From Monocercomonoides exilis PA203 (lineage: Eukaryota; Protista; Preaxostyla), in NCBI GenBank assembly GCA_001643675.2, contig LSRY02000018.1, positions 930,001 through 994,000 on the forward strand: 64,000 nt of DNA, given 5' to 3'. This document shows, one piece after another, positions 11,741 to 38,700 of the stretch. Under the pieces are notes generated by a model. It made no database searches. It had not been told where the DNA came from and saw only the letters and a list, made by a program, of their open reading frames with translations. The position numbers and the translations under genes were made by a program. Each line of letters begins with the position of its first letter. Position 1 is the stretch's first letter.

Positions 11741-11756
11741 CACCAAAAATTATTCA

Positions 11757-13867: not shown

Positions 13868-14515
13868 TCGTTCGTAATGTTTATCCCAATTTTTAATATT
13901 TTTAAAAATTTTAATATGATTTTGTGGGATTTACTCCCCATGTCACCCACCAGTTTCTTATGAGAGTTAAATGGAGGAGAAGCCCCCCCATTTCCCCCCC
14001 ATAAGAAACAGGTTTCATATTAAAATACAATAAACATAAAGATCAATTTAGACTAATATACAGAAAAAACAATTATCAGCCAAAATTGTGGGAATACTTA
14101 AATGAATCTTCAAAAAATGGAAAAAAAAATCACAAGTCTTGAGTTATTTTATGATTTTAAATAATTCAAACAAATTTTTGCACTAAAATTCTTGCTTTTA
14201 ACAAAAAGAAAAATTTGATCAACAATATTTTCATTTCAAATAAAAGAAAATATTGCAGAATTCAAACCTTTTGTTTCGTGTCAAATTGAACATATCGTTT
14301 GGAATTCATTTCGATCCATATTTTCGAAATTTTCATTATTTTGCTTTTCACTTCAAAATTCTGGATTCTTAACATACCTTGCAAAACTTTCCCTCCTAAT
14401 TAATTATAAAATCAACAAATAAAAATAATTAGAAAACGAATAAATCAATTGATAACAAAGTGTATTCAAAGAAAAAATTATAATTTCTTATTTATTTGCA
14501 TTCGAAAAATTATAA

Positions 14516-15325
14516 CTAAACATTTAAATGTGAGTTAAGAAGGCCAAAATACCAACCAGTTCCACGCAAATCTGTTATTGAACAATTTTCCACTCTGTTA
14601 TCTTGGAACGTCCAAACAGAATTTGATTGCGGATACCATGATGTGACTGCTCCTCCATAAGCAGCTGAACAGCTCGAGAAATTGGAATTTGCGATATTGA
14701 CATTTAATAAATTTTGAGCGAACAACGCTCCACCATGATCATTGGTTGAACAATTGTTGAATGAACACGATATGATTGCAAGATTAGCATTTGTTCAATC
14801 CACATAAAGCGCTCCTCCTCGATCTGGCCCACCATTTGAATCATTCCATTCGCACCATTCAAAAAGATAGCTATTCAGGTTGAATGAGAACATTCTTTCA
14901 AGTTTTAATTTATGAGTTTCGGATCCGTTATATCTTACAACATCATTTGGAGAAGAACGTGTTTGGTGGAGAAAAGAAGCGTTGAAGGCAGAAAGAGAAG
15001 TGGATTGGCTGTTGATGTTGGGGAGGATAGTTCCATCGATGGCGTTGTGTGTGTGGAGGAAGAGGGATGAGTGGATGGAGAGGGAGGAGTGAAGAGAGAA
15101 GGAGGGAATTGAATTAGTGTTGACGTTGGCGGAAGTGGAAGTGGAAGAAGAGGTGGTTGAGGTGAATGGGTTGAGTGAGCGTGAAGGAAGAGATGGAAGA
15201 GATCGAGGGGATTGGGGAGAGGAGATGTTGGAGAAGAGGATGTTTGAGAGATGGAGAAGGAGGTGGAGACTGGTGAGTGGGCATCTGGGAGAAAGAATAT
15301 TTGGGTGGGGGAAGACAAGAAGCAA
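14516..15325 (-). pseudogene. Captured or degenerate N-terminal fragment of a beta-helix surface protein gene inside the 9-kb element
   Basis: ORFs 14795-15325 and 14516-14725 are one frame separated by a single TGA: NAIDGTI...FEWCEWN...RGGALYVD*TNANL.IISCSFNNC...GGALFAQN...C.A.YGGAV. Collinear with the N-terminus of the 2479-aa protein; truncated. Confidence 0.75.
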
Positions 15326-18300
15326 CTCTACGGCAGAAGATGAGCAAAATGAAGAAGGAAAGGAAGATGGAGATGGTGATGTTATAAGTGCCGGAGCGGA
15401 CGAAAAGCGAGCAGAAGGCGCTGGTCAAGAAGGAAATTGAGAAGCGGTATGCAGCATTTTCATTAAAAACAGAGGAACAGAAGAAAATGAAGGTGAAGTG
15501 TGAAGAGTTAGCGCATTGGCTTGTTGAGCAGGTGAAGGAGATGAAGGAGCAGGTGGAGATGGTGAAATTTAAGCATGTGCAGGGAAGGTGGATCAGATAA
15601 AAATGTTGTGAGGAGGAGGATGATGAAAAGGCAAAAGAAAGAGTGCGATCGTGATGTTTGAGATTCCGCAATCCCCGCATTATGATCCGAAGAGAGAGAG
15701 AGCGGGAAGAGTCGGAGTGGCCTGAGAAATCGCTGTGTTGAACGGGGACAGTGATGCCTGGTGCATGTGCGGCAGTTCCACCAGCAGTGTAGATGGTGAT
15801 GGAGCGGCTGATGAGAACTATCTCTGAGTAGCTGATGCAGGTGGTGAATGAAACAGCGCATATGTTTCAGATGATGCTCCAGTTGCAATCGTCTGAACCG
15901 ATTCAGCAGAGTAATCAGCTGCTGGAAACAGGGCCTAAATCTTCGATAACGTGATCTTTTTCGATTATCCAGAGGATATACGGAGATAAGATCTCTGAAG
16001 ACATAAGCTGAGGATGTCGAGGGCGGGCTGGTGTGGTGCTTCCAATGTGAGGGTTTGGAGATTTTGTGTTTATATGGCTGTGGGAGAAGCACTCTACGTA
16101 AAAAAAGAGCGAGGCAACGCGGTAGGATGAGATCTTCGGAGTGGAGCTGTTCCGGAAGTACTTTCAGAAGATGCAGCCATTTGATGAGTTTGCGCTGGAG
16201 AATTTTTCTGGAGATGAGCTGTCATTTTTTATGTTATTCAACACAGTGCTTGAAGGAGATTCGAAGAAGAAAACCATGTTGTTTTTTGGGGGATTTTGAT
16301 GGGCTGCATTCGGAGAAAGGTGAAGAAGAGTCATCTGTGTTTGTTGCGTTTTTGCCGAACCTTCATCGGGCAGAAGCTGCAAAGATGAAAGATGAGTGGA
16401 GGAACCCTATAATGACAAATGTTTAAATGATGAATCTTCTTCTTCGTATTTATCTTCGTCATCTGGTGTGACTTGTTGTGTCATCACGAACGATGATATG
16501 GAGTCTATTTGGTATGTGCCATCTGCGAAAACTGCCTGTGCTGTTGCTGCGGATCTTCCAGTTAGCTTGCTGATTATTTGGATTCTGTTTGTCGTCATTT
16601 TCATGGGTGCTGAATGTGTTCCAGCACAAATACTTCTTCATGCGCTGCCTGAAGATGCCAAATGTGTGAGAAGCTGCCAACTTCAGATTTCCTCAATTCT
16701 TACCACAGAACAGCTCAGTTGTGAAGACGGTTTGTCGGAGCTGGATGATCAGGTGCAGGTGCTTTCGGTGGTGTCAGCGGGGGCAGGGCTGGATCGAAGC
16801 GATGATGCTGGTGCAGCTGGTGGGGCGGGAGCTGGAGAGGGAACGAGGTGGAAGAGGCAATCTGCTTTGCTGTGCTGCTGGGGAACGGGCAGCGTGTGCA
16901 GCTGCTTCACAAGGAGATGGTGTGGCAGAGGGAGGGATTGAGGGAGGAGTCAATGTATTGTCATGCTTCATCATCAGCATCTCCTTCTTCAGCACAGTAC
17001 AAACAAGTTCTGAATTGCAAAGAATTGGCAATCGACAATATGCTGCTGTTCTTTGCGTGTGCGTCGGGTGTGATCGATCCTTCCATTTCTCCTCCTTCAT
17101 TTTCATTGGAGTTGTCATTTCCATTGCAATCGTTTTCTTTTCCTTATTCTTCTTCTTCTTCTTCCTTTTCTTTCTTTTTTCCTTTCTCTTGACTTATCTT
17201 CAAGCATCCCTCAAATTTCTATTTTCATTTTTCATTTTTTCTTCCTTTTCATTCAAATTTTCTCTTTCATTCAAATTTCTTTTAAATATCTTCTTTTTCT
17301 TCTCGATCATTTGCCAAATTTCTTCTTCTGCCACATCATCAACTTTTGTTTCCCTCTTTTTGCTTTTAACAAGATTCGTCCTATATGTCTTCCAAAGCCT
17401 TCAAAAATTTTTTATCTTCTTTTCCATTCATTTCATTTATATTTCACGCCCCCTCACTCCTCCAAGCGCCCCTTCAATTGCTGTTTTCTGACTTCTTTAA
17501 TGCATTTAACATCCTTTCTTTCCATATTCTATAGGCATATATTCGCAGTAAATATACCTGCGAAACAATCTAATTTCAACAAAAATAATAATTAATGAAA
17601 AAGAACATTGAAAAAAGAGGCAAACCTATGACTGTTATGATAATCATTCTTTTCAAATTTTCCTCTCCTCCTCCAAATATTTCTCCATTCTACCAACAAA
17701 ACCCATCCGCCACATCTTCGCTTCATCTCTGCTCCCAAAAAATCGTTTTTTTACAATCCTCTGTTCTGCTTCCACTCAAATAACCTCCACAAACTCCATT
17801 CTATAAAAAAACTGATAAAGAAGAAGATTCCATCTGAAGAATCCCTTCCCATCTCTTTTCGCTGTATTGCCTTCTTCTTCTCTCCATTTCCCCCCAAAAC
17901 AACAACAATACCACCACGCCAAATATCACAGTCCCTGTCTCCCCATCTCCCATTCCCCTTCTTCCAACCAATAAAAATATAAATACCTCCATCCTTTTTC
18001 TGTCTCTTTCCATTGCAAGACACCTCCCATAGTCAACCCCTCATCTTCCTCTGTCTCCACACCTCCAATGCAAAGCGCCAGCGCTGATGTTCCTTCTTCC
18101 CGTCTTCCTCCACCCCCACCTCCATCCCTTGCCCTGCAAATGAGAGGCGCGACCAAACTGTCCTTTCAATAAAAAATTAAAAAAAGAAAAAGAAAAAATA
18201 TTTTCTTTTTTTTTCTTCAATCCCACTTTTCCTTCTTATCAAACACTCACTCACAAATACTCTCCCTCTTGCTCCGCCTCATATGAACCCTCTTCTCTCT

Positions 18301-20288
18301 CCCTGCATTTGAAAAAAAATATCATCCCTTTTCCCTATCTCTCCATTTCCTTTCCCCCTTATATCCTCTCCTCCAATAAATATATTCCATTCACTCCACC
18401 CATCTTCTGTCCTTCTTGTTTTCCCCTCTTATCCCACCTCCTCCACATCAAATTCCATTTCTCAAATAATAAACACTGCCTCAACTCCTTCCCAATAGCA
18501 AAAATCTCAAAAATAACCCTTCCCAACCTCATCCTTATCCATCTCCCACACATCCATTATGCCTCTTAAACCTCCCAAAAACACCTCTTTTCCACAAAAA
18601 ATATCCTTTAATCGTTCCATTCCCCTTCAAAACCCTGCTTCCTCCAAAAACTCAACTCCATCACTCCACACCACAAATCCATCCTTTTGTTATCGCATTG
18701 TCTTTGTATGCCCATTCATCCACGACACATCGAGTTGTGCTCCTTTTCTTTTGTGGCTCAAATTAGTTATGGAAAATGATCAAGAAATGCCAAATGCTCA
18801 GAAACTGTCAACGGGGTCAGATTCCGAAGCTAAAACAAAGACAGGTTGACCAAGTGAATTAATTACAGTGAAAGGGTTGGGTGTTACAAAACGATATCTG
18901 CTTGATGGAAGATGAAATTGTTCATTTTGATTGATAGAATGCCGTGAAGCAACAATATTTTCGATGGAAATGCAGAATTTTTACTGTATGTATTTTATAT
19001 TGTTCTATATGTTGTGAAGGTGTTATCATCCGTATCCTTTCCAAAGTCGTGATTCAGACAATTTATTTAAAATGGACGATTTATTCTTTGCAGAACAGAA
19101 CTGCAATGAAACGAGACAAATATTTTCTTACAAATATATTGGAGCCTGAATGTATTTTGTTACGAATATTTATGGAAGTTATTTTGGACTCAACATGCGC
19201 AATGGATATAAATACGATGAATATGAATTTTGCGAGAACGAAGAGCTTCTGGATGTGGAAAACTTGCGGACATAAGAGATTTTATTTTAACTTACGACGA
19301 CGATGAAAAACTCTATCCGAAGAAAAATATGAAATAGATATTTTTGAAGAAATAAATGATGAGAGAAAAAAATGAAGAAAAACGAGGAAAAAGGCTGAAC
19401 AAGAAGTTTGAAGACAAACAAAAATGAAACTGCACTTTTGTCGAAGTAAGAACTTAGAAGAATTGAAGTTAATAGCTGTGCTTTTGTAGGACATCATTAA
19501 AACCTTTTTTTTTTTTAAATTGGAATTTTTTAATCTCTTTTTTTAAAGAAATTCTTCAACAAAAATATCTGAAATTGTAATGAATATCGTTAATTGTGAT
19601 TTTTTCCCAATTGTTTATCAAAAAACAATAGTGAAAAAGGTTTTATTTGAATAATCTTTAAAAATCACAAAAAAATATCTTTTATTAGTCTTTTCAACTA
19701 ATTTTAATAAAAAAACAGTAGAGCATTTTTCGATAAAATGTTTTGAAAAACTTCAAAAGAATGCATAATATATTTTTTCACAAAAAAAATCTGGCTCCCT
19801 GAGTAAATGCAAAATTCCCCTAAATTTTCAAAATTTCCATAGACAATTTCAAAATAATTGGGTTATTTCAAAATAACCCAATAATTTAGAAAAAAATTCT
19901 GCATTTCACGATTCATCTAATAATCATGGAATATTTTTTTGATCTGTGGTGATTTTTCTAAAAATTTTCATCCGTATAAAAATTTTTCTTTAATTGAAGA
20001 AAAATGTTTATATCGTTTTTTCAACATAATCAATATTTCCTTTATTTTCATAATGATGTCAACTCAAAACTGAAAAATAAACAATTTTTATTAATTTTTA
20101 AAATTTTTGCATAAACGTTCAAAAGTTCAAATCACATAAAGTGATATTCAATAATTCAACAATTTTGAAAAATAAATATAACTTCTATATGAATCTTGAT
20201 AATAAACATTGTATTAAAAGAAAAATTCAACTGTATTTCTATTTGGTTTTATTCATTTTTTCTGTATCTTAAGATTTCCTAATAATAA

Positions 20289-20751
20289 TTTCGACTTCGT
20301 TTGAAAGTTTTTCGATTTCGTTTGAAAGTTTTTCGATTTCGTTTGAAAGTTTTTCGATTTCGATTGAAAGTTTTTCAACTTCGTTTGAAAGTTTTTCGAC
20401 TTTGAATGAAAACTTTCGATTTCGTTTGAAACTTTTTCGACTTTGAATGAAAATTTTCGACTTCGAATGAAAGTTTTTCGACTTCGAATGAAAACTTTCG
20501 ATTTCGTTTGAAACTTTTTCGACTTTGAATGAAAATTTTCGACTTTGAATGAAAGTTTTTCGACTTCGAATGAAAACTTTCGATTTCGTTTGAAACTTTT
20601 TCGACTTCGAATGAAAATTTTCGACTTTGAATGAAAGTTTTTCGACTTCGAATGAAAATTTTCGACTTCGAATGAAAGTTTTTCGACTTCGAATGAAAAC
20701 TTTCGATTTCGTTTGAAAGTTTTTCGACTTTGGTTGAAAGTATTTCGACTT
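20289..20751 (-). repeat. Tandem array of ~22-23 x 20/21-bp units in the right TIR (inverted relative to 11757-12078)
   Basis: Reverse complement of the same unit types, with more copies than the left array. Confidence 0.95.
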
Positions 20752-20871
20752 TGAATAATTTTTGGTGTATCTCATCAATTCAAACTCATTTGATATTCAA
20801 AACTTTTAAAATATCTTCATTTGTGCTCAGAAAAAATAATTTTTTAGAATTAAGGAGAAACTCAAAATCCT

Positions 20872-23800
20872 GGCATAGGTGCATCTGTGCTTCTTTTGCA
20901 ATTTGCTCTGTTTGGAATAAACTTTATGATGAAATAATAGATAAAAATAATTTAAAACTTTTGGGTGGACGAATTTTTTGAAATTGTTTTTTCTTGTTGA
21001 AAAAAATCAATTTTGAAAAATCACCCATAAATATTACAATTTTTAATCAAAATAAATATATAAGGATAATTACCTATATATAAATACATGCAATGATTTT
21101 AATTGTTATATTAACCTTTTGTATCAATAAATTTCTGAGAAATAAAACATTTCAAAAAATTAAAATTTAAATGAATAATTTTTGATCAATCCCACAAATA
21201 AATTATAAATTTCTAAAGATTTAGGATTAGCTTTTTTTGTGATGTGTGGGGTGAACACTTTCCAATATACCACAATTTGAATATATAAACATTATATTAT
21301 CGTATGCACTGATTGTTATTTAAAATATTCTTCTACTATTAACAAATTTTGATTGTTAGAATATGAAGCTGATAATTATGCAACATGAAACTTCATGAGT
21401 CTTCCATTGGAGAAATCTATTAAAGAATTTTTGTTCATTCGATAAAATTTATATCATATTATATTATGTTTTGTTTTAATGAAAATTATTCATTTGTATT
21501 TCAGTTAATTTAAATTTTTCAATTCAATGAATGAAAGAATCACTGAAAAAAAGCAGAATGAATCGAAAAAGGAAATATATCGTTGAAACCCTTATCGAAA
21601 CACCCTTCGAAGACGTGCGCAGGTGAAAATAATTGATTGATGAGAAGTCGAAATAAAGATAGTGAAATGGAAATAGAAAAAAAATTACAAAGAAGAAGAA
21701 GAATTTGAATGAGGAAAAGAATATAATAGGCGCAGGTGACTGAAAAGATGATATCATTAAGGAAACAATAATTTCAAAAATCGATGAATTTGATTATTTG
21801 AGGTCAAAGGTGAGAAAAAATTAGAAAGACTGAGAACAAAAAGGAAAAGAAGAGAAACAGGAAAATAAGTGTTGACTGGTGTGTATATTGAGTTTCGATG
21901 TGGAAGATGAAAAAGTTAACAAAATGGAGCATTATAGTTTTTGTTATTGTTATTTCTTCAATTCCTTTGACTGTTTTTTCAAATATTCAACATTTCAGAA
22001 GAATATTATTAAAAATTATATTTGGGTAGTTAGTTAAAAATTGATATACATTTTTTTGCAACTCATTATTCATGAGAGCAATGTATTGGAATTATTAAAA
22101 ATTTTTGACTTCATATTTTTAAATATTTATAATTCCTTTGAAACGCTCTTCATTGAAAAAGAATGATACAAGAATCCTCGATGATTGTCACTTGAAAATG
22201 AGCAGTCATGCACTTTATTCTATCTCCCTCACTTCCACATCCATCGATCACAAGCGCTTTCAGAAATGAACAAGAATCTTCGATTGTGCCTCCATCCATC
22301 AATTTCACTTTTTTTCTCCTTCTGTTCCATTTCTGTCAATGCTATCATTTTTTTCTTTTCATCGATTGGCACAAGAAGATTTCATCTCCACTATCCCGAT
22401 TCATCATATCCACACACTTCCCACTTCCCACTCTCCCATTCAACACCCCTCCATTCCTATTCCCTCTCTGAATTGATTTGAATGTGCAGTTCCAGATTTT
22501 CGCATTAATCCCTTCTCCAATCTCAATCTCATTTCCATTCTCAAAACGAGTTCATTCATCGTTGTGTTCTTTATCTCAACATCCCCTCCATTTCTCAGCT
22601 AAAAAATAGGCTTCTTCCCTCATTTTCTCTTGTCACATTCTTCACAATCACCTCATCAATCAATCCTCCAACCCCTGCTCCATCAAAAGTCACTATCACT
22701 GATTTGGTTATTGCAAAATCTCCAAATTCACAATTTGCCAACTCCACTTTCCCTCCTTTCCCACAAATCAATCCCACTCCAATCTCTTGTGATTTTGCTC
22801 CAAATGAACATTCCTCAAATTTCAATGTGCTTGCACCGCACAAAAATACATACTCCTTTCTTGATTCGGCAAATGTTGATATCGATAATGCCAATGACGA
22901 AAACGATATTATTTGTTCGCTCTTTATCAAAAATTCATTTTCTCCTCCTTCGACAATTCCAATCTTTGCCTTTTCAATATCTCCACCAATGTTCATTTGT
23001 TGAGTGTTGAGTATCATTTCATCAATAAAAAAACTTCCATCAACAAGTTTCAGTGTTGCTGGTGATGTGCCAAACACATTTGTTCCTGCATATGTCAATG
23101 TGGAGCATGCAAAGTCAGAATATCCGCACTTATGATAGTTCATCCCTCCATTTCCCCCATTCACAAACCCAACACTCGGCTTCTCTCGTAGATCAAACTG
23201 AAATTGACATTTATTGATCAAAGATGTAATGTTGTAACATTCAATGAAAATATCATTCCCCACTCTTGCTGTATAAGCACTAAACTTCATCCACATAAAT
23301 GTGAAATCCTATTTTCCTCTTTCCTTTATTGGCAAATACGCTCCTCCTTTCCCATTGAAGCAGCTGCAATGACTGATTTTTCTGTTAATCAACCAATTGA
23401 TCCAGATTCCACCAATATGAAGAATATTGTTCCTCCATTTTCATTTGAAATCATACTGTCTGCAACATTCCGAAATGAAAATATAACAAATATTTGACAT
23501 AATTTGAATAAAGTTAAAATATTCTCCAATATTTAAAAAAATAATTATTTTTTTAACGATTTTCCGAATGAACAAAAATTCTTTAATAGATTTCTCCAAT
23601 GGAAGACTCATGAAGTTTCATGTTGCATAATTATCAGCTTCATATTCTAACAATCAAAATTTGTTAATAGTAGAAGAATATTTTAAATAACAATCAGTGC
23701 ATACGATAATATAATGTTTATATATTCAAATTGTGGTATATTGGAAAGTGTTCACCCCACACATCACAAAAAAAGCTAATCCTAAATCTTTAGAAATTTA

Positions 23801-24134
23801 TAATTTATTTGTGGGATTGATCAAAAATTATTCATTTAAATTTTAATTTTTTGAAATGTTTTATTTCTCAGAAATTTATTGATACAAAAGGTTAATATAA
23901 CAATTAAAATCATTGCATGTATTTATATATAGGTAATTATCCTTATATATTTATTTTGATTAAAAATTGTAATATTTATGGGTGATTTTTCAAAATTGAT
24001 TTTTTTCAACAAGAAAAAACAATTTCAAAAAATTCGTCCACCCAAAAGTTTTAAATTATTTTTATCTATTATTTCATCATAAAGTTTATTCCAAACAGAG
24101 CAAATTGCAAAAGAAGCACAGATGTACCTATGCC
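20872..24134. mobile_element. Non-autonomous Pack-type DNA transposon, copy A (3263 bp), with 570-bp TIRs, GGCATAGG termini and 8-bp TSDs
   Basis: TIRs at 20872-21441 and 23565-24134. Left flank AAAATCCT; right flank CGCACTTT (reverse complement AAAGTGCG). No transposase inside. Confidence 0.92.
22480..23495 (-). pseudogene. Captured internal fragment of a beta-helix surface protein gene in copy A
   Basis: ENGG.IF..L, GKGGA, F....A..GNDIFIEC.NI...I...QFQFD and FV......Y.KCGYSDFACSTL match the repeat modules of the 32777-40216 protein. It has stops and deletions. Confidence 0.75.
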
Positions 24135-25015
24135 CGCACTTTATGAATTGATTGCAGCCCATCCAACCACTTCCGTTTGGCAGGATATCTAGAGTTTGTG
24201 ATTGCGGCGGCTTCATTTCGTCATGAAGGCTCTTGCTTTACCATAGAATCACAGAAGAAAGTGTAAATCCATCAACAGCCACAGCAGCAACTAGAGTTGA
24301 ATTCGCCATTTTGGTGGTTCTTTGCGAAATCCTGGATTTTCGTTTTAAGGATGAACCACGCTCTGCTTTGAATTAATATGGACTCTCAGTGATTACTCAT
24401 CCATGTTGAATATTAGTTCTTTGTCGTATTCATTTTTTTCATGTGGACCGTCCAGCAATGAATACCAGGGCTGCAGAATACTTTGGCACGACACCGCAAT
24501 GCGATTAACATCAACATTTTTAGGCGAACTTTTCTTCAGCTCATGATTGCGCTTCACAAATTGGTAAGTGGTTCCCATTGAAATGTTAATGTGTAGTGCG
24601 TCTTCGTCATATGTATCATTAATCACATTTTCTATCTGATATATTTGTCAGGATTATTAATTATTAAAGAACAACGAACCAGTTCGCGAACTTTCCGTTC
24701 AGGCAAACAGCTTCCAGATCTTGATTCAATGATAATTTCATCCAGTACAATTTGTTCTTTGTTTCTTATCACAAATTGCGGTCTTCCAACTTTTGAAACC
24801 AGCCTTTTGCTTCTCAGTGCCCGAACAGCGTTTTTGATCCTTTTGTGTGAGAATTCCATGGAGTTTATTGCGTCTGTGATCCTGACAACTCCATCCACCA
24901 CAATGCGCGCCATCCGTTACAGCCGATTGTCAATCCTTCTGAAATCGAAAGATTTCATAGCAGCACGTAATTTCCTTTGTCCAGCAATTCTCTTTTGTTC
25001 CACAGCAATTTTCAT
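24135..25015 (-). pseudogene. N-terminal half of a pogo/Fot1-like (DDE_1) transposase pseudogene
   Basis: GRP motif and HTH region, a 44-nt GT-AG intron (24636-24679), IFNMDE, T.VAAVA.DG and NGSGWM. It ends at ...FIKC where copy A begins. Several stops. Confidence 0.85.
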
Positions 25016-25090
25016 TTTTTCTATTATGGTTTTGATCTTAAGTCCAATTCATTCATTTATTAATTTTCATTTTCAATTTTCATTGAAATA

Positions 25091-25541
25091 CAGTCCAAAC
25101 CGGATATAATCACATCGGTTTTTGCATAACTTTTTGTGACTGTGTCCGATTGTGATTATTAGCGATGTGACTTTACACAGAAAAAATACGAATATTTATT
25201 AATTCAATTATTAATTTTGGGTAAATTTTTAATTTTTAAAAATTCTTCAGAAAAACAAATTATTCACTTGCGAAACGAATTTTTATCATAAATACTCATT
25301 ATTTTGAATTATTTGAGCACATTTTTGAAAAAGCGAAAAATTGATATTTTTGATTAAAAAATCGATTTTTCAATGAAAAAATCACCAATAATAATAAAAA
25401 AATGTGATTATATGTTTTCATCACTGTAATTATATGCGATGAAAAATGAATGAAAAACTATCAAAAAAAATCGGTGCATCGAAAAATGTGATTATATACG
25501 AATGTGATTATATACGACGTGATTATTTCCGGTTTTGACTG
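25091..25541. mobile_element. CAGTC-type MITE (451 bp), TA-flanked
   Basis: TA|CAGTCCAAACCGGATATAATCAC...GTGATTATTTCCGGTTTTGACTG|TA, with many internal ATAATCACA motifs. It is an inverted paralog of 27115-27827. Confidence 0.88.
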
Positions 25542-25547
25542 TATATA

Positions 25548-25804
25548 TGGGTGATTATTTTTGAAATCATATATTTTATCGGGGTGTTGATTTTTCAAAG
25601 ATTGAAAATTTTTCGAAAGAAAATTATTTTTTCAAAAGAGAAAAAGCATAATGATTGTTATTAAAAACAAATGGTTATTCCGAATCAAATATAAAAATGA
25701 ATTCAAGAAACCTTTTCACGTTTCAATTTTTTTTTATTGATATTCAAGAAATATTTTCGAACCGAAATTTTTGCATAAAAATATGATATCAAAATAATCA
25801 CCAA
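25548..25804. mobile_element. TGGGTGATTA-type MITE (~257 bp)
   Basis: TGGGTGATTATTTTTGAAATCATAT...ATATGATATCAAAATAATCACCAA. Paralog of 27311-27572, with a slightly decayed right end. Confidence 0.8.
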
Positions 25805-27114
25805 ATTATATAATGCATATGTGTAGAATCACATTACCGTGCAGAAAGTGAATTTTAAGTTTTTGTCATACAACTCTTTCTAATGAAGAAAACGGAATAA
25901 CTGTTGATCATGGCATCTGACCGATCATTCCCAATATTAATTCAGAGAATTGCGAAATTTTGTTTTTTTATGCAGATCATGAAATGAAAAAGTTGAAATA
26001 GGAAAAATTGAATTGTTTGAATTTCTGTGTTTTGAATACTTTAGGGTTAGAAGCAAATATGCAATCTTCATTCATTAATTTTAAGATCTTTGAAATTTTA
26101 CTTTTGTCATGTTAAAAATGTGAAAATAAAAATGATATTTTTGGATTTATATGAAAACACAATGATAGACGTTTGGAGCGCTTTTATAAGGGTATAAGTT
26201 TGTGCCTAAAAAGCAAATTAAAATTTTTTTGGTTTCTGTAGCGATGCTGTTTTCCTATAACCTTTGAAAGCTGCATTCTCCGCTGTTATTAATTTATATG
26301 AGAACATGTGATGAATGAGTTTCTTCAAAATCTTTAACAGTTTCAACAGTTATAAAGAGATATTTGAAAAATAAATGGTCAAATAAGATTATTTTTAAAT
26401 AAGTTATGGGGTTGATCTGTGAGATGCTATGATCGAAGGTCATGCTGATTGATTATCATCTTTCTTTGCGGAATTGTGACTTTTCCGCGTTTATCTTTAT
26501 TAATTAAAAAATGAATATTCAAACCGAATTTTCACGTTAATAACTACATGGGACAAATTTTTATTTTTGTTTGAAAAAACAAAGATTTGTTTCAATCATC
26601 CTTTGAAAGCAAATCGTGAATAATCAAAGGTTTATGGTTTCTTTAGGGAACTTAAATAAATATATAAATTCACTTTATTGAAATACAGTGTATTTTCGAA
26701 CCAACTTTTATCAACATTCTTTGTTGTTGAAAAAATACTTAAAAAATCCTTTTTCACACTTTCAAATGTCTTTTCTAAAAATTAAACATTATATTTCTTA
26801 AATACAAAAGTGAACTTTTTGAATCAATGAATTTTTCTAAACTTATTTTATTGCTTTTGAGATTGTTTTGTTGAATGAAAAGGCTCTTTCCAGTTGTTTT
26901 GCTTCATTACAATAATATTTAAATCTCTTAATAAGAGTGAAAAAAACCAATATTTGATAAGATGGTGTTTCATATTGCACATCTTGCATTTTTTTTGTTC
27001 ATTGTTGCACAATGAATGAATTCTTTGTGACGTAACTTGATGAATATAATGGGTTCATTTTTTTAAAAAATACGTTTGAGGTTGCAAAACGATATACAGA
27101 TATCGCATTAAATA

Positions 27115-27827
27115 CAGTCAAAACCGGATGTAATCACATCGAATATAATCACATTCGTTTATAGTCACATTTTTCCATGCACCGACATTTTTAGCTCATT
27201 TTTCATTCATTTTCCATCGAATATAATCACAGGGATGAAAATATATAATCACATTTTTTATTATTATGCGTGCTTTTTTCAATGAAAAATCGACTTTTTG
27301 ATCAAAAATATGGGTGATTATTTTTGAAATCATATCTTTTTTCGGGGTGTTGATTTTTCAAAGATTGAAAGTTTTTCGAAAGAAATTTTTGTTTCAAAAT
27401 AAAAATAACATGATAATTGTTTTTTAAAATACAATTGTTTCAGTTAAATGAACGATTAAAAATGTTTTGAATAAGTCTTTTCACTCTTCTATGTTTTTTA
27501 ATTGTTATTCATCAAATATATTTGCACCGAAATTTTTGTTAGAAAAAATATGATTTCAAAAATAATCACCCATATCAATTTTTGTTTTTACAAAAATGTG
27601 CTCAAATAAGTCAAAATAATGAGTATTTATGATCAAAATTGTTCAAGCAAGTGAAAAAAGTGTATTTGTGTTGAATTTCCAAAAATAAAAAAATCGACCC
27701 AAAACTAATTATCTCAAAAATCAATTTTTATTTTCTTCTGTTTAAAGTTGCATCGCTTATAATCACAATCGGATATTGTCACAAAAAGTCGTGCAAAAAC
27801 CGATGTGATTATATCCGGTTTTGACTG
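27115..27827. mobile_element. CAGTC-type MITE containing a nested TGGGTGATTA MITE; TA TSD
   Basis: GCATTAAA-TA|CAGTCAAAACCGG...CCGGTTTTGACTG|TA-TTGGACATCGC. The empty-site equivalent GCATTAAA-TA-TAGGACATCGC is at 11646-11666. Confidence 0.9.
27311..27572. mobile_element. TGGGTGATTA-type MITE (262 bp) nested in the CAGTC MITE; TA TSD
   Basis: ATCAAAAA-TA|TGGGTGATTATTTTTGAAATCATAT...ATATGATTTCAAAAATAATCACCCA|TA-TCAATTTT. The empty site is in the paralog at ~25337-25354 (reverse complement ATCAAAAA-TA-TCAATTTT). Confidence 0.9.
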
Positions 27828-28013
27828 TATTGGACATCGCTTAAAATACCGGACATCATCGATTTCTCTGTAACTGCAAGAGGAATTATTTTTGACAATT
27901 TTCCTCAAAATATATCTCATCAATACAAACTCAACTGAAAAACGAGACTTTCAAAATAGCTTCTTTATGCTTAGGTAAAATTATCGATTGAAATCTCGGA
28001 ATAATAGGATTTT

Positions 28014-31000
28014 GGCATAGGTACATCTGTGCTTCTTTTGCAATTTGCTCTGTTTGGAATAAACTTTATGATGAAATAATAGATAAAAATAATTTAAAAC
28101 TTTTGGGTGGACGAATTTTTTGAAATTGTTTTTTCTTGTTGAAAAAAATCAATTTTGAAAAATCACCCATAAATATTACAATTTTTAATCAAAATAAATA
28201 TATAAGGATAATTACCTATATATAAATACATGCAATGATTTTAATTGTTATATTAACCTTTTGTATCAATAAATTTCTGAGAAATAAAACATTTCAAAAA
28301 ATTAAAATTTAAATGAATAATTTTTGATCAATCCCACAAATAAATTATAAATTTCTAAAGATTTAGGATTAGCTTTTTTTGTGATGTGTGGGGTGAACAC
28401 TTTCCAATATACCACAATTTGAATATATAAACATTATATTATCGTATGCACTGATTGTTATTTAAAATATTCTTCTACTATTAACAAATTTTGATTGTTA
28501 GAATATGAAGCTGATAATTATGCAACATGAAACTTCATGAGTCTTCCATTGGAGAAATCTATTAAAGAATTTTTGTTCATTCGGAAAATCGTTAAAAAAA
28601 TAATTATTTTTTTAAATATTGGAGAATATTTTAACTTTATTCAAATTATGTCAAATATTTGTTATATTTTCATTTCGGAATGTTGCAGACAGTATGATTT
28701 CAAATGAAAATGGAGGAACAATATTCTTCATATTGGTGGAATCTGGATCAATTGGTTGATTAACAGAAAAATCAGTCATTGCAGCTGCTTCAATGGGAAA
28801 GGAGGAGCGTATTTGCCAATAAAGGAAAGAGGAAAATAGGATTTCACATTTATGTGGATGAAGTTTAGTGCTTATACAGCAAGAGTGGGGAATGATATTT
28901 TCATTGAATGTTACAACATTACATCTTTGATCAATAAATGTCAATTTCAGTTTGATCTACGAGAGAAGCCGAGTGTTGGGTTTGTGAATGGGGGAAATGG
29001 AGGGATGAACTATCATAAGTGCGGATATTCTGACTTTGCATGCTCCACATTGACATATGCAGGAACAAATGTGTTTGGCACATCACCAGCAACACTGAAA
29101 CTTGTTGATGGAAGTTTTTTATTGATGAAATGATACTCAACACTCAACAAATGAACATTGGTGGAGATATTGAAAAGGCAAAGATTGGAATTGTCGAAGG
29201 AGGAGAAAATGAATTTTTGATAAAGAGCGAACAAATAATATCGTTTTCGTCATTGGCATTATCGATATCAACATTTGCCGAATCAAGAAAGGAGTATGTA
29301 TTTTTGTGCGGTGCAAGCACATTGAAATTTGAGGAATGTTCATTTGGAGCAAAATCACAAGAGATTGGAGTGGGATTGATTTGTGGGAAAGGAGGGAAAG
29401 TGGAGTTGGCAAATTGTGAATTTGGAGATTTTGCAATAACCAAATCAGTGATAGTGACTTTTGATGGAGCAGGGGTTGGAGGATTGATTGATGAGGTGAT
29501 TGTGAAGAATGTGACAAGAGAAAATGAGGGAAGAAGCCTATTTTTTAGCTGAGAAATGGAGGGGATGTTGAGATAAAGAACACAACGATGAATGAACTCG
29601 TTTTGAGAATGGAAATGAGATTGAGATTGGAGAAGGGATTAATGCGAAAATCTGGAACTGCACATTCAAATCAATTCAGAGAGGGAATAGGAATGGAGGG
29701 GTGTTGAATGGGAGAGTGGGAAGTGGGAAGTGTGTGGATATGATGAATCGGGATAGTGGAGATGAAATCTTCTTGTGCCAATCGATGAAAAGAAAAAATG
29801 ATAGCATTGACAGAAATGGAACAGAAGGAGAAAAAAAGTGAAATTGATGGATGGAGGCACAATCGAAGATTCTTGTTCATTTCTGAAAGCGCTTGTGATC
29901 GATGGATGTGGAAGTGAGGGAGATAGAATAAAGTGCATGACTGCTCATTTTCAAGTGACAATCATCGAGGATTCTTGTATCATTCTTTTTCAATGAAGAG
30001 CGTTTCAAAGGAATTATAAATATTTAAAAATATGAAGTCAAAAATTTTTAATAATTCCAATACATTGCTCTCATGAATAATGAGTTGCAAAAAAATGTAT
30101 ATCAATTTTTAACTAACTACCCAAATATAATTTTTAATAATATTCTTCTGAAATGTTGAATATTTGAAAAAACAGTCAAAGGAATTGAAGAAATAACAAT
30201 AACAAAAACTATAATGCTCCATTTTGTTAACTTTTTCATCTTCCACATCGAAACTCAATATACACACCAGTCAACACTTATTTTCCTGTTTCTCTTCTTT
30301 TCCTTTTTGTTCTCAGTCTTTCTAATTTTTTCTCACCTTTGACCTCAAATAATCAAATTCATCGATTTTTGAAATTATTGTTTCCTTAATGATATCATCT
30401 TTTCAGTCACCTGCGCCTATTATATTCTTTTCCTCATTCAAATTCTTCTTCTTCTTTGTAATTTTTTTTCTATTTCCATTTCACTATCTTTATTTCGACT
30501 TCTCATCAATCAATTATTTTCACCTGCGCACGTCTTCGAAGGGTGTTTCGATAAGGGTTTCAACGATATATTTCCTTTTTCGATTCATTCTGCTTTTTTT
30601 TCAGTGATTCTTTCATTCATTGAATTGAAAAATTTAAATTAACTGAAATACAAATGAATAATTTTCATTAAAACAAAACATAATATAATATGATATAAAT
30701 TTTATCGAATGAACAAAAATTCTTTAATAGATTTCTCCAATGGAAGACTCATGAAGTTTCATGTTGCATAATTATCAGCTTCATATTCTAACAATCAAAA
30801 TTTGTTAATAGTAGAAGAATATTTTAAATAACAATCAGTGCATACGATAATATAATGTTTATATATTCAAATTGTGGTATATTGGAAAGTGTTCACCCCA
30901 CACATCACAAAAAAAGCTAATCCTAAATCTTTAGAAATTTATAATTTATTTGTGGGATTGATCAAAAATTATTCATTTAAATTTTAATTTTTTGAAATGT

Positions 31001-31275
31001 TTTATTTCTCAGAAATTTATTGATACAAAAGGTTAATATAACAATTAAAATCATTGCATGTATTTATATATAGGTAATTATCCTTATATATTTATTTTGA
31101 TTAAAAATTGTAATATTTATGGGTGATTTTTCAAAATTGATTTTTTTCAACAAGAAAAAACAATTTCAAAAAATTCGTCCACCCAAAAGTTTTAAATTAT
31201 TTTTATCTATTATTTCATCATAAAGTTTATTCCAAACAGAGCAAATTGCAAAAGAAGCACAGATGCACCTATGCC
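28014..31275. mobile_element. Non-autonomous Pack-type DNA transposon, copy B (3262 bp), an inverted near-identical copy of 20872-24134
   Basis: TIRs at 28014-28583 and 30706-31275. Left flank AGGATTTT (reverse complement AAAATCCT); right flank AAAGTGCG. The differences from copy A that I noticed are 1-bp homopolymer indels. Confidence 0.92.
28653..29667 (+). pseudogene. Captured beta-helix surface protein gene fragment in copy B
   Basis: Same sequence as 22480-23495 in reverse complement, with an extra 1-bp frameshift at the T-run near 29115-29120. Confidence 0.75.
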
Positions 31276-31895
31276 AAAGTGCGCACTTCCAACACTCCTT
31301 CAAGGAATTATCGATAACAGAAAGCGCATGTCACTGGAAAACTTTCGCTGCTTGCTTCTCATTGATTCACACATTTCTCGCGCAGATCCGACAATTTGGA
31401 GAAAAGTTCGAAAAGAAAATATCGACATCATCACCTTCATTCCTCACAGCACACATATCGCCCAGCCTCTTGACAGAGGAGTCTTCGCTGTTCTCAAAAA
31501 AGAACTGCAAACAAAATATGAACCTCCATCTTCATCGACATCTTCATCATAAAGAATAGCTTTTATAAATGTTCTACTTCAAGCAATTCATACCTCCCTC
31601 TCATCTGCTGTCAAAAAAAGCCTTCACAACAAGTGGAGTTCTTCATGACGAATCTGGACCGATTCTTTTGAAGCTTCCAGAAACATCGGAATATCAACCT
31701 TCATCACATTCAAAAAGATTCGACTTCTATAGCAAGTTAATAACTGATGAGAAGCTACTGAATGATTGGAGTAATTATTTTGGAATTGAAGAAGAAGAAA
31801 AAGCTGAAAAAGAAGAAAAAGTTGATGATGAAAAGAATTCTTCAGAAGAAATTAAAAAAGCATGGCAAAAGACGATAATGAGCTTTAATCTTTAA
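31276..31895 (+). pseudogene. C-terminal half of the pogo/Fot1-like DD35D transposase
   Basis: KCALP...LLLIDSHISR...ITFIPHSTHIAQPLDRGVF.VLK (35 residues between the second and third D). It joins in frame to the 24135-25015 half across the TSD AAAGTGCG (F-I-K-C-A-L-P). Confidence 0.88.
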
Positions 31896-32776
31896 ATGAA
31901 ACGAAAAAAATAAAGAGAAAATTTGGTGAAAGAAGATAATCGTGAAAATGAAAACGAAGTTTTCAATTTGATTGAAAGATAAGAGAAAAAAAGAAAAGTT
32001 ATACATAAATTTAATTCGTCATTAACCTTTTTTCAATTTTAATTTTATTATTTTTCATAACAAAAAAATTTCCCAATGAAAAAAAAGGGTCACAACAAAA
32101 TAACTGACCCTATTATTTTTATTTTGAAAAAAAAATATAATCCCTCATTAATGTGCTTTATCAGATTTCGCTGTTTTCATTCATGTGACATGATTTAATT
32201 CTCAAACTATCTGATAATCTTTCATCCCAGACATCGAACAAACAAATAAATACTTTGATATTTTGGAAAATAACATGGAACGACAAAAAGGAAAAAACAT
32301 ATAAGAAGAGATATGAAACAACAAGAAAAGAAAACAGTCTTTGAAATAGTCACGCGTGAATACTCCCATGAAATTCAAGCGATTTCATGGAGTATTCATT
32401 TCTATTTGAGATGAACAAAAAGAAAATTAAATATAGACACAATATTTCCAATTCAAGAACACAAAAACAGATAATGCACATACACACAATATAAGACATG
32501 CAAATGAGACACTTTTTGTGAAGCTGTTTAAGAGAAGCGGAAGCATCGAAAGGAAAAGAGAAATAAATGTATCTTTGATGAAATAAATTACACATTAACC
32601 ATAACATGAAGCAGCCATGCACAAAATCACTTTTTCTTTCAGGAAGTTCTGTTGAGCAATAAATACAAAACAAACCAAAAGGAACAAGCACAACCTTTAT
32701 TTTGGAAGCGTTTCAGACACTCTTTTCAATTCGTCAAACATGAATCCAACAAACAAAGAAGCCAACCAAATAAGAA

Positions 32777-35700
32777 TCAAAGAGACTCATCGAGTTCATT
32801 CAGAAAACGGATCACTTCATCAAGTGAAGGCCTGCCACCCGGTTCGTCTGCCCACATCTTCTCCATCACCTCAACCAGCTCTTCTCCTTCAATCCCTTCA
32901 GTCAAGGGCCGAACGCCATCCCTCATCATCTCCTGCGCTTCCTCCGCATTGCATTCACTTAAAGGTACTTCCCCTGTTGTCATTTCATGGAGAATCAGCC
33001 CAAGTGTGAAAATAACTGCCTTTTCAATTTCCTCATCTTCATTTCCCGCTTCAGGTGCCTTCCATCGCTTCATTTCTTCCTTTTGCTTTTCATCCTCCAG
33101 TTCTTCTGCCAATACGAATATTTCGTTATTTCCTTCCTCAACAAAGATTGAATATGGGCATAATTGTTTCCCAATCATTTCCACCCTTTCGTCTCCAATT
33201 GAAATCAAATGCTCAAACAGCTCTGCAACTGCCAAAACCACCACCTTCCCATCAACAACATCCATCGCTCTTGTTCCCAATGTGAAATTACCTTGAATTG
33301 AATGAATTGTCGAGTACAATGTTTTTATGTTCCTTTTCTCCTTCTCTCGAAATGGCTTTTTCGCTGATATCACATTGAGTGAATGAGAGTGTGGCATTCC
33401 AGAAACACAAACATCCTCAAATCTTGGTGAGGGAAATTCATAAACTGACATCTCATTTTCATTCAATGTTTCATCATTCGTTGTCGATGGCGATTCTGTC
33501 TCATCCTCCTCATCGTTGTCAATCAGCAAAGGAATTTGGCTCGTCATCCCTTCCAGCAACGTTGATGGCATCCCATCCATCTCAAAGCTTTCTCTGCTCT
33601 TTTCTTTTCTCCTCTCAGGCTTATTTTTCATTGCCCCCTCTTTCAACCCTATTTCCTCGATTTTCTCAATCATTTCACTCATCTTCTTTCGCAGCAGCAC
33701 AACAACCATAACAAATACAAAAATAAATATCAAAAACAACACAGCAATTATAACAATAACAATCGCACTCCATTCATTGTTTCTCCCTCCTTTATTGATA
33801 TTTCCATCTCCTTCATCAACAGTACCACCTCCTTTCGATTCTGATACACTCTTGTTTATCACCACAATTCCATTGGATGAAGATGATTTGTTTTTTCCAA
33901 ACAGAATGAATATGCTCACTTCTGTTTTATTCTCCATCACTTTCAACAGTTCAGACGAAATCGTTGAATGCACCTCGTTCTCTGATATGAAGCCATCATC
34001 TTCAATGATGTTTGTGTGTGAATGTTCAATATCTCCATTTTTCATGCTTATCTTCACCCACAAATCGCATGGCAGAAGCAGCTTCCCATAAATTATTAGC
34101 TCCATTTCTCCGGTTGCTTCTTTTCCTTTCACACTCTCCAGAACTGGAAAGAAAAACGGCGATGCTCTTTCTGATGCAATTCCACCAAGAGCGCATCCAT
34201 CATTCAAAATCCAAAGAGAAGAATTATCTTTGACCCCATCTCCACCTTTCAAGCTCGAAATGGTCAGCGATGCAGAATCTGAGCAAATGATGTTTCGACG
34301 AAGAGAAGGATATTTTCCATTGAATGGATTGTTATTCAGAAACTCTCCTTTCTCAATTTTCACATTGCCTGAGGACAAAGATAACCCACCTTGTGGAGCA
34401 TTCGAAATTATCACATCCTTCATCACCAATGAAGAATTCGCTGAATGGACAAGCGATCCATTCCATTTGCATATTCCTTCAAATGCATTGCTGCTCTCAC
34501 TTTCGCTTTCTTTCATAAGCACTCCTTCAATCTCACATATGTGCATCGAAACATCTTTCATATCACACACCTCAGCAACACTTCCTTTTTTAGATAAGGA
34601 AATGCAATCTGAGCAAGAACAGTTTGAAAACTCTAAATGAGCAGAAATTGAAGATGCCCAGAGAACAGAAGCTCCTTCCGAATACCTCGAACAGTTGTTG
34701 AATGAGGAGCTTCCAATCGAAACACTTCCCGAAGTTGAACCATTTATTGAAATAACACAACCACCAGATAACTTTATTCCATCTGCATATACTCCATTAA
34801 ATACAATATTTCTACAGCTGCCAATCTCAAACACATTTGTTGTTGATTCAATCTGTTCTAATTTCATATTTGTGATATTCATCTCATCTCCATTTAGCAG
34901 AAACGAAGGCTTCTTGAACGAGAGGAACGATATCGTGCAGTTGTCAACATGAAGAATTCCATTTTCGATGTTCAATAATGTTGAATTGAGAACAACAGAT
35001 TCAATGTTTTCTGATTGGCCAACAGAAGAAAAATCAACAAATGATAAAGAAAGCTGGCCATTTGTTTCATGGATAATAGAACTGCTTGAATAAGAAAATG
35101 GCTGGCCAAAGTTGAATTTCAATCTCTCAACCCGAACAATCCCTGTTGTTGTGATGACGTTTCCCTCATCGCAAGAAATTGTTGAGTTCATATATACCAG
35201 AGCAAACAATGGAGATTCAAGTGAGCGAACGATAACATTCTGCACACTGCATTCCTCATTGATGACCGTCTCCTCTGATACTAACAGCTGTGAATAACGT
35301 GACGGAATAATGTGATTCACTCCGACATTCAACGATTCACAAGGCATGCTGAACTCTCCACAAGACTTGAAACCAGAGTGATTTTCAGAAACAGCTGACA
35401 CAAATATCGTCTCGCTTTGGTATTTCATAACTCTCAGCAGAAGATCTTCTTCTCCAACAAATGAATCTGTTGTGCAGCCCCATATCGCCAGCTCCTTCAC
35501 AAATGGCAATCCGAAGTCCAACATGAATTGCTCTTCAACTATTTGTGCTTCGATTGAGTTGCATTTCACGTACACATCTCTCCCTCTGAATGCAGAGTTG
35601 TCTTTGAATGTGATATTGGATAATACAAAGTTCAGAGGCTGTTCAACTGTCGAGGTGCATTCCAGAAACAGCCACCCGCCTCTTCCTGTGCTTGAGCAGA

Positions 35701-38700
35701 AGCACTCAGAAATCGTGCAAAATGAGCAATCAAGACTTCCTCCTTCATTCAACGCATAAAACATCCCTCCTCCCTTTTCGCATTTCAACCCTCCGCATCT
35801 CTTCATCGTTGTGTTTCTTATCAGTATTTTCAAAGACATATCATTGTCATTTCTAATGATGGGAATATCGTTAGTTGTGTTTTGTGTGACTTCTTCGAAA
35901 ATACTCCATTCAATAACAACATCTTGTTCAACTTCATTTTTCTCTCTCCCTGAACTCTTTGATATCCTCAATCCGCTTGCTCCTTCCAGCACAACATTCT
36001 TCATTGTCAAGTTCTTGATGTTCAAAATTGTTGTTGACAAAACAGAAATAATATCCTTTGAAAAGCAAAGTGATTGAATTGCCACAAATTCCAACACAAC
36101 TGTGCCTTCACCTGCATCGATCAACCCAAAGTTAATCATTTCTTCTTCTCTGCTTTCCTCATTTTCGCTGAATGAACAATCTTTCAGAGTCAATAGTCCT
36201 TCACTTGATCCAATATGCAACAAAACATTGACTCCACTTGCGAATGACGATGGAACAACAAAGTTTATCAGTTCGAAATTGGTAATACGCTGAATCTTCA
36301 TTGCTGCTCCTTCGGCTCCTTCAAGTGATGAGTGACATTCCAAAGAGCACATGTCTTTATTATTTGAGCTTATTGAAATTCCACTGAGATCAACACTTTT
36401 TTGGAGAACTCCTTTTCCAATGATGTTAATATTCTTTTCATTTCCCTCAGTCAATCGATCCAATGAATAATCAATTGACAGGCAAGGACAATCCGAAAAC
36501 CCACAGGCACCCATGTCTTTTCCATCATCTCTGATAAATATCTCTGAGCCAATTGCTCTCCAGAAATACACCAGTGGAATAGCATTCTCTGTATCATTCC
36601 CATCAAACCCTCTCATGGAATTGAATGAAATATCATCCAGATTCTCAGTCACAAATGGAAGTGAGTCATTTGTGATGCTCTTTGTCAAGTTCAATGCTTC
36701 AACGAAAAGATCATTTCCGTATCTCGCAATATTTGATTTTTCAGAATCGAAAACAGGTGATGAAATCACAAATGAAGAATAATCATCAATCAACTTCAGT
36801 GCCATTCCTCCTCCAAAGCCAGTCTTTTCTTCTTCTGCTGGTGCTGTGCATCCTGTGAATGTGCATGAAATAACATTCAATTGAGTATTTCCTTTCAATT
36901 GAGCATTAATGGCCCCTCCTCTGCTTTCATCAGCCAATACAGAGCATCCATCAAATTCACATTCTTCAATATTTATTTCACCATTTGAATTTTTGTCATT
37001 GTTGTTGTCAATGCTCACACACCCTCCACTTCCAGCTGCCCTTTCTATTTCTGTGAAATTGCAGTTCGTCATGTTCAACCACTGAGTGCTTATTAACTCG
37101 GCTTTTGTGATGCTTCCTGATAATGAGATCAATGGATTTCCGCTCAAAGTGATTGACGAAGCTGAGAACGAATCAATTGTCAGGATTCCTGATTCAACAG
37201 ACAAGGAGAGAAATGTCAATTCTAATGATGGATTTTGAAGGGAAAGAGAACAATGAGACAAAGTCAGTTGTGAAAAAGAAGAAATAAAAGTGGAGTGTGA
37301 TGAAAGAGAAGGAGGAATAGAGAAGATGAGCTTTGATAATTCTGTTTCAACATTAGTTGTTACCATCACTGAGTTTGATGTTGAACTTGCATCAGAGACT
37401 GTCCAGCCACTTTGATCATCATTTCCATGAATTTCATGCTTCTGTTCACCAAGTGCCAATTCATCGCTCATCGAAATCATTCCACTCACAACAACTTTCT
37501 TTGTTCCTGTCAACCGTGTGAGGGAGTGTTTCATTGTCAAACAAGGGAATTGGATAATTCCACAATGAGAATGATCAGATGCCTCAATGTTATTCACATA
37601 AATTTCTGAAGGGCTGGGAAGGAGATAAATGCACAGAGGAATGGCCAAACTGTTGTTTCCATTGTCATATCCTCTCACCTTGTCAGCAGTATCTGACGAT
37701 GCCGTAACACACGAGATCTTTTTTGATTTTGCAGTCATTTCCAGATTTGGTGATAAGACGAAGATATCTCTTCCCCACTTGGCTGTGTTTGTTCCAAATG
37801 AGGAAGAAATCAGGAAGTCAGGATTGTCGTTCATCAATCGAAGAAGGATTCCTCCCCCCAGGCCATTCAATGCCGAGCAAAAGCACTCATCAAAGGTCCC
37901 GCTTTCAACATTCACTTCATTCACTTCTCCTGCACACAGCATCATCGATCCTCCATTTTCTGAACTTGTGCTTCCACATCCTTCAAAAGTGCAAGAATCC
38001 AGATGAATGTTTGCCTTGTCGTTGGAAAACGACATCACTGCTGATCCGCTTGTTGTTCTTTCAATTCCATCAAAAGTGCATTCTGAAAGCATCAATGAAA
38101 CTTCATTTGTTGAAGAAAGCGAAAACAATGAAACAGTTGAGGCCATCCCTTTCCACTTCACATGGTCCATCTGAAACATCCCACTCTGAACATTTATCAG
38201 TTCTGTCGAAAATGCTGTTTCTGAAGATTGTCCACTTCCAGTAGATATGTTCAGTCCACTTATATGCATCTCTCCTGCTCCTGTGATCTCAAACAGCCTT
38301 GACCCACGGTTATTCAGATGAACCGAGTCATACACAAGGACAAAATCTCTAACAGTCAATGTTCCCGCTGATACAGAAAAAAGAGACAACTCAGATGCTT
38401 CAAATTCTGTTTGCATCATCGTGCTCGAATCACTTTGCCCGCATATTGTGAATGCATTGACACCACAATCCACACTTCGTGTTTCGACAATTGTTCCTGC
38501 CAGCATTTCGATGTCTTTCACAACACCTGGAATCATCTGTGTCAGACAATGGCTGACTGTGCAGCATGGATGGCTTTCGTTGATTCCACATGCAAATGCA
38601 TCTCTTGCATTCTCCTGATTCTGCTTCGATCTCACATATCTGATCCTTCCTCCTTCATTCCGAAGCCATTCGCTTTTATCAACAATTGAGTCGAATCTGA

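Follow-up and report, generated by a model that had tools for sequence, protein, structure and literature searches.

An apparent 3.9-kb inversion between oppositely oriented copies of a Merlin-type transposon in Monocercomonoides exilis

Layout of the locus

Two copies of a transposon lie in opposite orientations, 3.9 kb apart, in the genome of the oxymonad Monocercomonoides exilis PA203, and the DNA between them appears to be inverted relative to its ancestral order. The stretch analysed is 64,000 nt of the forward strand (LSRY02000018.1:930,001-994,000; assembly GCA_001643675.2). It is referred to here as the window, its positions run from 1 to 64,000, and it corresponds to contig C12:930001-994000 in the contig numbering used for genome searches, which covered 82.3 Mb in 101 contigs. 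The assembly (Treitli et al. 2021) was made from 12.9 Gb of Nanopore reads with a read N50 of 8.9 kb, using Canu 1.8 followed by Nanopolish and Pilon; its authors state that errors persist in multi-copy regions despite polishing (PMC8767320). The ancestral order of the locus was inferred from paralogues, rather than from an orthologous, uninverted chromosome.

The two transposon copies were recognized by repeat finding as 3.26-kb blocks that are reverse complements of each other. Copy A (20872-24134, plus strand, 3263 bp) is a non-autonomous Merlin-type element without a transposase. Its terminal inverted repeats occupy 20872-21441 and 23565-24134 (570 bp each), and it carries a cargo open reading frame of 233 aa on the minus strand (22595-23296). 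Copy B (28014-31275, minus strand, 3262 bp) is the element of copy A in inverted orientation. When aligned globally, A and B are free of substitutions and differ by one base at three places, each within an A/T homopolymer run of 6-8 bases; these differences look like residual errors of the kind reported for multi-copy regions. The terminal inverted repeats are ~570 bp long in each copy, and their sole mismatch is at position 10, where the two outer ends have G and the two inner ends have A. The first-pass annotation, which was made from the sequence of the window, had described near-identical inverted repeats of 3.26 kb, and this description is accurate.

Insertion of each copy into its own target would be expected to leave one direct duplication around A and another around B. 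Instead, the duplications are exchanged between the two copies. Read directly from the window, the order is AAAATCCT-A-CGCACTTT ... AGGATTTT-B-AAAGTGCG. The 8-mer on the left of A, AAAATCCT (20864-20871, plus strand), has its reverse complement on the left of B (28006-28013, minus strand; AGGATTTT on the plus strand). We call this pair target-site duplication X; it is present as a single copy in the paralogous empty site. Similarly, the 8-mer on the right of B, AAAGTGCG (31276-31283, plus strand), has its reverse complement on the right of A (24135-24142, minus strand; CGCACTTT on the plus strand), and this pair is target-site duplication Y. Given the base composition of the window, the chance of one 8/8 reverse-complement match is ~5e-5, and that of both is ~2.5e-9. 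The exchange had been noticed in the first-pass annotation, and it is found at both pairs. The segment that would have been inverted, 24135-28013, is 3879 bp long and wholly transposon-derived.

Paralogues of the two breakpoints

The left breakpoint lies in a foldback miniature inverted-repeat transposable element (MITE), all parts of which are now on the plus strand. The outer part of its left arm (11638-11740) starts with the terminus CAGATATCGC and aligns both to the other arm and to an intact paralogue, L041:3373-3768. This arm is split by a nested Tc1/IS630-type element of 9 kb (11741-20767), beyond which it continues with its inner part and the loop (20768-20863) as far as the insertion site of A. 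The outer tip of the right arm (27097-27110) again begins with CAGATATCGC and is now direct relative to the left arm. The right arm is interrupted by a nested 721-bp element with 31-bp terminal inverted repeats (27111-27831), and its remainder, together with loop sequence (27832-28005), reaches the left end of B. Within the nested 9-kb element, an open reading frame of the DDE_3 (Tc1/IS630) type lies at 12662-13867, and a 41-bp minisatellite is found at 20289-20756, near the end of the element.

Once the 9-kb and 721-bp nested insertions are removed, the left flanks of A and B are ~80-90% alike in direct orientation. Other paralogues of the foldback MITE are palindromes with a short loop (C47:704267-704800 and C69:1517483-1517838). 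The 10-mer CAGATATCGC occurs at 11638 and at 27097, both times on the plus strand; flipping the segment would make the pair inverted, as it is in the intact paralogue. The intact MITE at L041 can be aligned over its full length to the left flank of B followed by the reverse complement of the left flank of A, with identity at 314 of 395 positions. A perfect match of 19 bases, TAGGATTTTGAGTTTCTCC, between the L041 paralogue and the flipped order spans the junction, where the 8-mer is present once. In comparison with the intact MITE paralogue, the score is 385 for the flipped order and 196 for the assembled one. The first-pass annotation had proposed that a flip would restore a palindrome, and that palindrome can now be identified, since CAGATATCGC is the terminus of the foldback MITE and the intact paralogue fits the flipped order. 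The central 18 bp of the MITE loop are oppositely oriented in L041:3540-3575 and in the window (20854-20871 / 27990-28013, in one way of writing the reconstructed site); this is expected if hairpin loops between inverted arms flip.

The right breakpoint lies in a pogo element. The 5' half (24135-25089, minus strand) is decayed, with stops and frameshifts, and encodes the N-terminal part of a DDE_1 transposase. The 3' half (31276-32114, plus strand) encodes the C-terminal part of the DDE_1 domain and is recognizable on its own, with the piece at 31277-31549 matching Pfam DDE_1 at 4.9e-10; the intact pogo relatives L044 and L048 match the same family at 2.8e-13 and 4.8e-13, respectively. The minus-strand frame that reads ...GWMGCNQFIKC and ends at 24136 resumes as KCALPTLLQG... 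(KCALPTLLQGIIDNRKR) from 31277. When each half was used separately as a query, both were found on one strand, overlapping by exactly 8 bp, in at least 12 other genomic copies (C62, C27, C12:340k, C28:426k, C36, C80, two on C13, C38, C44, C30 and C33). When two intact pogo copies are aligned with both window pieces, the 8-mer is present only once at the join. Thus, as had been claimed, a flip rejoins the pogo frame, such that FIKC continues as KCALP, and the colinear paralogues have the same continuity. The earlier description of a transposase split onto opposite strands needs one correction: the split is there, and the gene that was split is a pogo copy that was already dead. Because this copy already has stops and frameshifts, no working gene would have been broken by the inversion.

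The two breakpoints therefore involve two independent repeat families, foldback MITE and pogo, one at each, and because the two agree, there is good support for the proposal that the segment 24135-28013 has been turned around with respect to the ancestral order and is bounded by identical, oppositely oriented A and B. An inversion of the 3.9 kb between the inverted copies, betrayed by exchanged duplications, had been the central claim of the first-pass annotation, and the paralogues at each breakpoint concur with it.

The family of the flanking element

What kind of element bounds the inversion? The genome contains 27 matching termini, at ~13 loci, for the family to which A and B belong. Perfect direct 8-bp duplications flank five other family members (CACTGCTC, AATTGCCC, TGGATCTT, TTTAAATT and TGGAAAAG), which indicates that 8 bp is the duplication length of the family. 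The subfamily consists of A and B alone, and the next copy is 87% identical. Most family members contain a repeat open reading frame, rich in cysteine and glycine, that matches no Pfam family, and they lack a transposase. A Pfam search of the cargo frames of A and its longer relatives, and of the annotated protein P0001, returned no family. A Merlin terminus was also sought at the edge of L047, and none was found there.

Termini of the GGCATAGG type, together with arms that are 82-89% identical to A, are found in a relative on contig C37 (C37:173416-183743). In its centre is a 365-aa frame (L037:6226-7320) that matches DDE_Tnp_IS1595 (PF12762) at 2.9e-16, with 60.3 bits versus a cut-off of 27. 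Because this relative shares the termini of A and B and also codes for a DDE transposase of the IS1595/Merlin type, the two copies can be assigned, on sequence grounds, to the Merlin-type elements, as non-autonomous, cargo-carrying members. The arrangement had initially been likened to the products of IS26 or Ac/Ds; the flanking element itself is neither IS26-like nor Ac-like, given the IS1595-like DDE transposase of the relative. At least 150 DDE_Tnp_IS1595-type (Merlin transposase) domains are present in the genome. The C37 relative (L037:1517 to L008:3036) is an autonomous 10.3-kb unit, with 3.19-kb inverted arms that are 99.84% identical and include the cargo gene, and a 3.9-kb centre; its outer flanks have no matching 8-bp duplication.

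The family resembles the Merlin superfamily, the eukaryotic relatives of IS1016/IS1595, which make target-site duplications of 8 or 9 bp, in its 8-bp duplication, in termini that start with GG, and in the IS1595-like DDE transposase of the relative. It differs in that A and B lack a transposase, contain part of a host gene family that is rich in repeats, and have terminal repeats of 570 bp; the arms of the autonomous relative on C37 extend to 3.19 kb. A related element encodes the annotated protein MONOS_9101 (P0001; 1140 aa; C49, L032), apparently a chimeric gene model in which the N-terminal part resembles pogo transposase fragments and the remainder is the cargo frame of a Merlin-type element.

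The terminal repeats within a copy are 98-100% identical in nine of the ten structures measured, the exception being that on C49 (L032), at 87.7%; between copies, the identity is 76-89%. Since terminal repeats are far more alike within than between copies, recombination between close inverted repeats appears to be active in the M. exilis genome.

How might the inversion have arisen?

The first-pass annotation had offered two routes without choosing between them, a local hop with subsequent ectopic recombination and a single transposition event. We favour, with a probability of roughly one half, the former, in which a local insertion is followed by homologous recombination between the inverted copies. 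Specifically, a first copy would have inserted in the loop of the foldback MITE, with duplication of AAAATCCT. A second copy, derived from the first, would then have inserted 3.9 kb away, in inverted orientation, in the dead pogo transposase gene, with duplication of AAAGTGCG; this hop would have been a local one that left the donor copy in place. Lastly, crossing-over between the 3.26-kb inverted repeats would have flipped the segment, such that each copy keeps one flank from each original site. That the subfamily has only two members, with the next copy at 87%, suggests that the second copy arose locally. We infer this order of events, and recombination rather than a single aberrant transposition as the cause of the flip, with support from the expectation that ordinary transposition is far more frequent than aberrant transposition. 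If exchange between the copies sometimes resolves as a crossover, the orientation of the spacer would be randomised quickly, however the pair arose, and the 3.9-kb segment should be able to flip again. Several observations weigh against an insertion followed by recombination. A and B have no informative differences, so chimeric copies, which are diagnostic of recombination, cannot be seen. The identity of the copies is exactly as predicted by a one-step model in which a hybrid element inserts. A local origin of the second copy, indicated by A and B being the only members of their subfamily, requires fewer assumptions if there was one event. Finally, the orientation of the segment comes solely from the published assembly.

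It is possible, if rather unlikely, that the arrangement was generated in one step from a single ancestral copy, either by hybrid-element insertion or by replicative transposition. In the former case, once the element had been replicated, the transposase would have paired the left end from one sister chromatid with the right end from the other and inserted this pair 3.9 kb away on the same chromatid, in pogo. In the latter case, there would have been a Shapiro-type intramolecular transposition in inverse orientation, for which there is a precedent in IS26 (He et al. 2015; PMC4471558). Both variants predict the observed product, X-A-Y' ... X'-B-Y, with sequence neither lost nor gained, and one event would account for the gain of a copy, its proximity, its inverted orientation and the inversion together. 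The element ends are nearly identical over 570 bp, leaving the enzyme with little to tell left from right. Moreover, the top 150 transposase matches include four close inverted Merlin pairs with equal bit scores and stop counts (C19:624302/625146, C80:178071/180449, C16:1002503/1012414 and C25:1119886/1149312), although some of these may be single giant-armed elements like that on C37. Identical copies are the feature by which Delprat et al. separate hybrid-element insertion from recombination (PMC2775673). Indeed, the locus has identical copies, exchanged duplications, and flanks without deletion or duplication. This combination also fits a recent local hop with later recombination; since a newly made local copy would likewise match its donor exactly, the identity of A and B cannot separate the two. 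Aberrant transposition is, however, expected to be far rarer than ordinary transposition, and if inverted repeats recombine readily, the present orientation retains no memory of how the pair originated. As for the replicative variant, IS26-type events involve a transposase with a demonstrated replicative (cointegrate) pathway, and the transposase of the family considered here is DDE_Tnp_IS1595, not IS6. Replicative transposition is not known to be established for eukaryotic elements that have terminal inverted repeats. Hybrid insertion makes up most of the probability that we give to a one-step origin, and of the one-step models described for eukaryotes, the nearest is sister-chromatid hybrid-element insertion, carried out by a cut-and-paste enzyme. 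Reversed-ends transposition involving two copies already in place was considered separately and rejected; it would have created a new direct duplication and left a footprint, and would not have exchanged the old duplications. A further near-identical inverted Merlin pair is located at C91:1062229/1065650. A close, inverted pogo pair whose halves score almost equally is found at C13:1250197-1255309, and this pair and the four Merlin pairs with equal scores are candidates for further inversions with exchanged duplications, or for giant-armed elements.

Alternatively, the inversion may be an artefact of assembly: two ordinary insertions with direct duplications would be present in the genome, and the assembler would have joined reads through the inverted repeats in the wrong orientation. 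In a milder form of this explanation, both isomers exist in the culture and the assembly shows one. The identity of the repeats is compatible with such an error, as are the residual errors in multi-copy regions reported by the assembly authors (PMC8767320), which the homopolymer differences between A and B resemble. Short reads are unable to decide the orientation because recombination inside the copies leaves all four junctions between flank and terminus unchanged. Among short de Bruijn contigs from four runs of one sample, covering 19504-25503, the longest piece is 822 bp and none bridges a copy; joints and loose ends in these contigs near 20771, 24138 and 25086-25091 come from other copies of the surrounding repeats. 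Independent contigs encoding the 233-aa open reading frame of A were sought, and none is on record. On the other hand, with 12.9 Gb of reads and an N50 of 8.9 kb (PMC8767320), many reads should be long enough to cross 3.26 kb and reach anchoring sequence, and repeats that are shorter than the reads are resolved by Canu. Each half of the pogo element matches the assembly at 100% in one place only, such that there is no contig of the other isomer, and polishing errors alter bases, not order. A flip by the assembler through 3.26 kb is therefore unlikely given the reported read lengths, and we regard an artefact of this kind as improbable; a small remainder of the probability goes to none of these three explanations. 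A fold-back artefact within Nanopore reads was also considered, and is ruled out by the unique spacer and by the target duplication that B has of its own inside pogo.

A more doubtful proposition than a one-step origin in itself is that the A/B pair arose in one step and that the resulting 10.4-kb unit (20872-31275), with two outward-facing termini and 3.9 kb of trapped DNA, is a nascent composite transposon. A composite on C91 (L035:1579-7317; C91:1614778-1620516) fits this proposition. There, an arm of 1221 bp, which matches the far end at 100% in inverted orientation, abuts an internal terminus at L035:2800, and the whole unit is flanked by a direct 8-bp duplication, TTTAAATT. The presence of one such duplication around the C91 unit suggests that a unit with an internal terminus transposed whole. 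If the A/B unit is indeed a nascent composite, composite formation would be a route by which this Merlin-type family gains giant inverted arms and new cargo. Past movement of the whole 10.4 kb as a unit is a different matter, and is ruled out by the outer flanks, AAAATCCT and AAAGTGCG, which do not match.

Comparison with known systems

The closest parallels are inversions 2j, 2q7 and 2z3 of Drosophila buzzatii, which are associated with Galileo. In these inversions, as at the M. exilis locus, a DNA transposon with long terminal inverted repeats is found in opposite orientation at both breakpoints, with exchanged duplications and a target that is single-copy in the uninverted arrangement, and the same two candidate mechanisms have been discussed (PMC2775673). 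Delprat et al. (2009) expected recombination to yield chimeric copies and hybrid insertion to yield identical ones, with the outcomes otherwise alike (PMC2775673). There are also differences. The M. exilis element is Merlin-type, with 8-bp duplications. The Galileo inversions are megabase-scale polymorphisms for which an uninverted chromosome is in hand (PMC2775673), whereas the M. exilis inversion spans 3.9 kb and its ancestral order comes from paralogues. At 2z3, chimeric copies proved recombination (PMC2775673), whereas A and B are identical.

In the case of IS26, the second copy is likewise in inverse orientation, the DNA between donor and target is inverted, and the 8-bp duplications are present as reverse complements; IS26, however, is a bacterial element of the IS6 family with a demonstrated replicative pathway (PMC4471558), whereas the M. 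exilis element is a eukaryotic one of the IS1595/Merlin type for which a replicative route is putative. Hybrid-element insertion by P elements, and sister-chromatid or reversed-ends transposition by maize Ac/Ds, also resemble the one-step reading in that the ends of two sister copies act together, and insertion nearby on the same chromatid produces an inversion flanked by identical inverted copies (summarised in part in PMC2775673). For the P and hAT superfamilies there is genetic proof, whereas an involvement of sister chromatids in the M. exilis case is putative. The M. exilis inversion has the Galileo signature in another superfamily and another host, on a small scale and in transposon-only DNA; the kind of event is already known.

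Implications

A DUF2804 open reading frame lies near the transposon nest (window 9209-10771), and two very long intron-less open reading frames adjoin the nest on the minus strand, at 32777-40216 (2479 aa) and 42231-59930 (5899 aa). The inverted segment itself consists of transposon remains only, so no change in gene function is expected, and the biological consequence of the inversion is probably nil.

What, then, is the significance of the locus? It offers an unusually complete, sequence-only case of a transposon-bounded inversion, in which both breakpoints can be checked against uninterrupted paralogous sites and the family, its duplication length and its superfamily are defined. No earlier report of a Merlin-bounded inversion or of an inversion of this kind in an oxymonad is known to us (the literature was not searched for one); with this case, the Merlin superfamily and an oxymonad would join the elements and hosts in which such inversions have been described. 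For M. exilis, the locus marks recent Merlin activity and recombination between inverted repeats, and any flip-flop of the 3.9 kb would be measurable in the existing Nanopore data.

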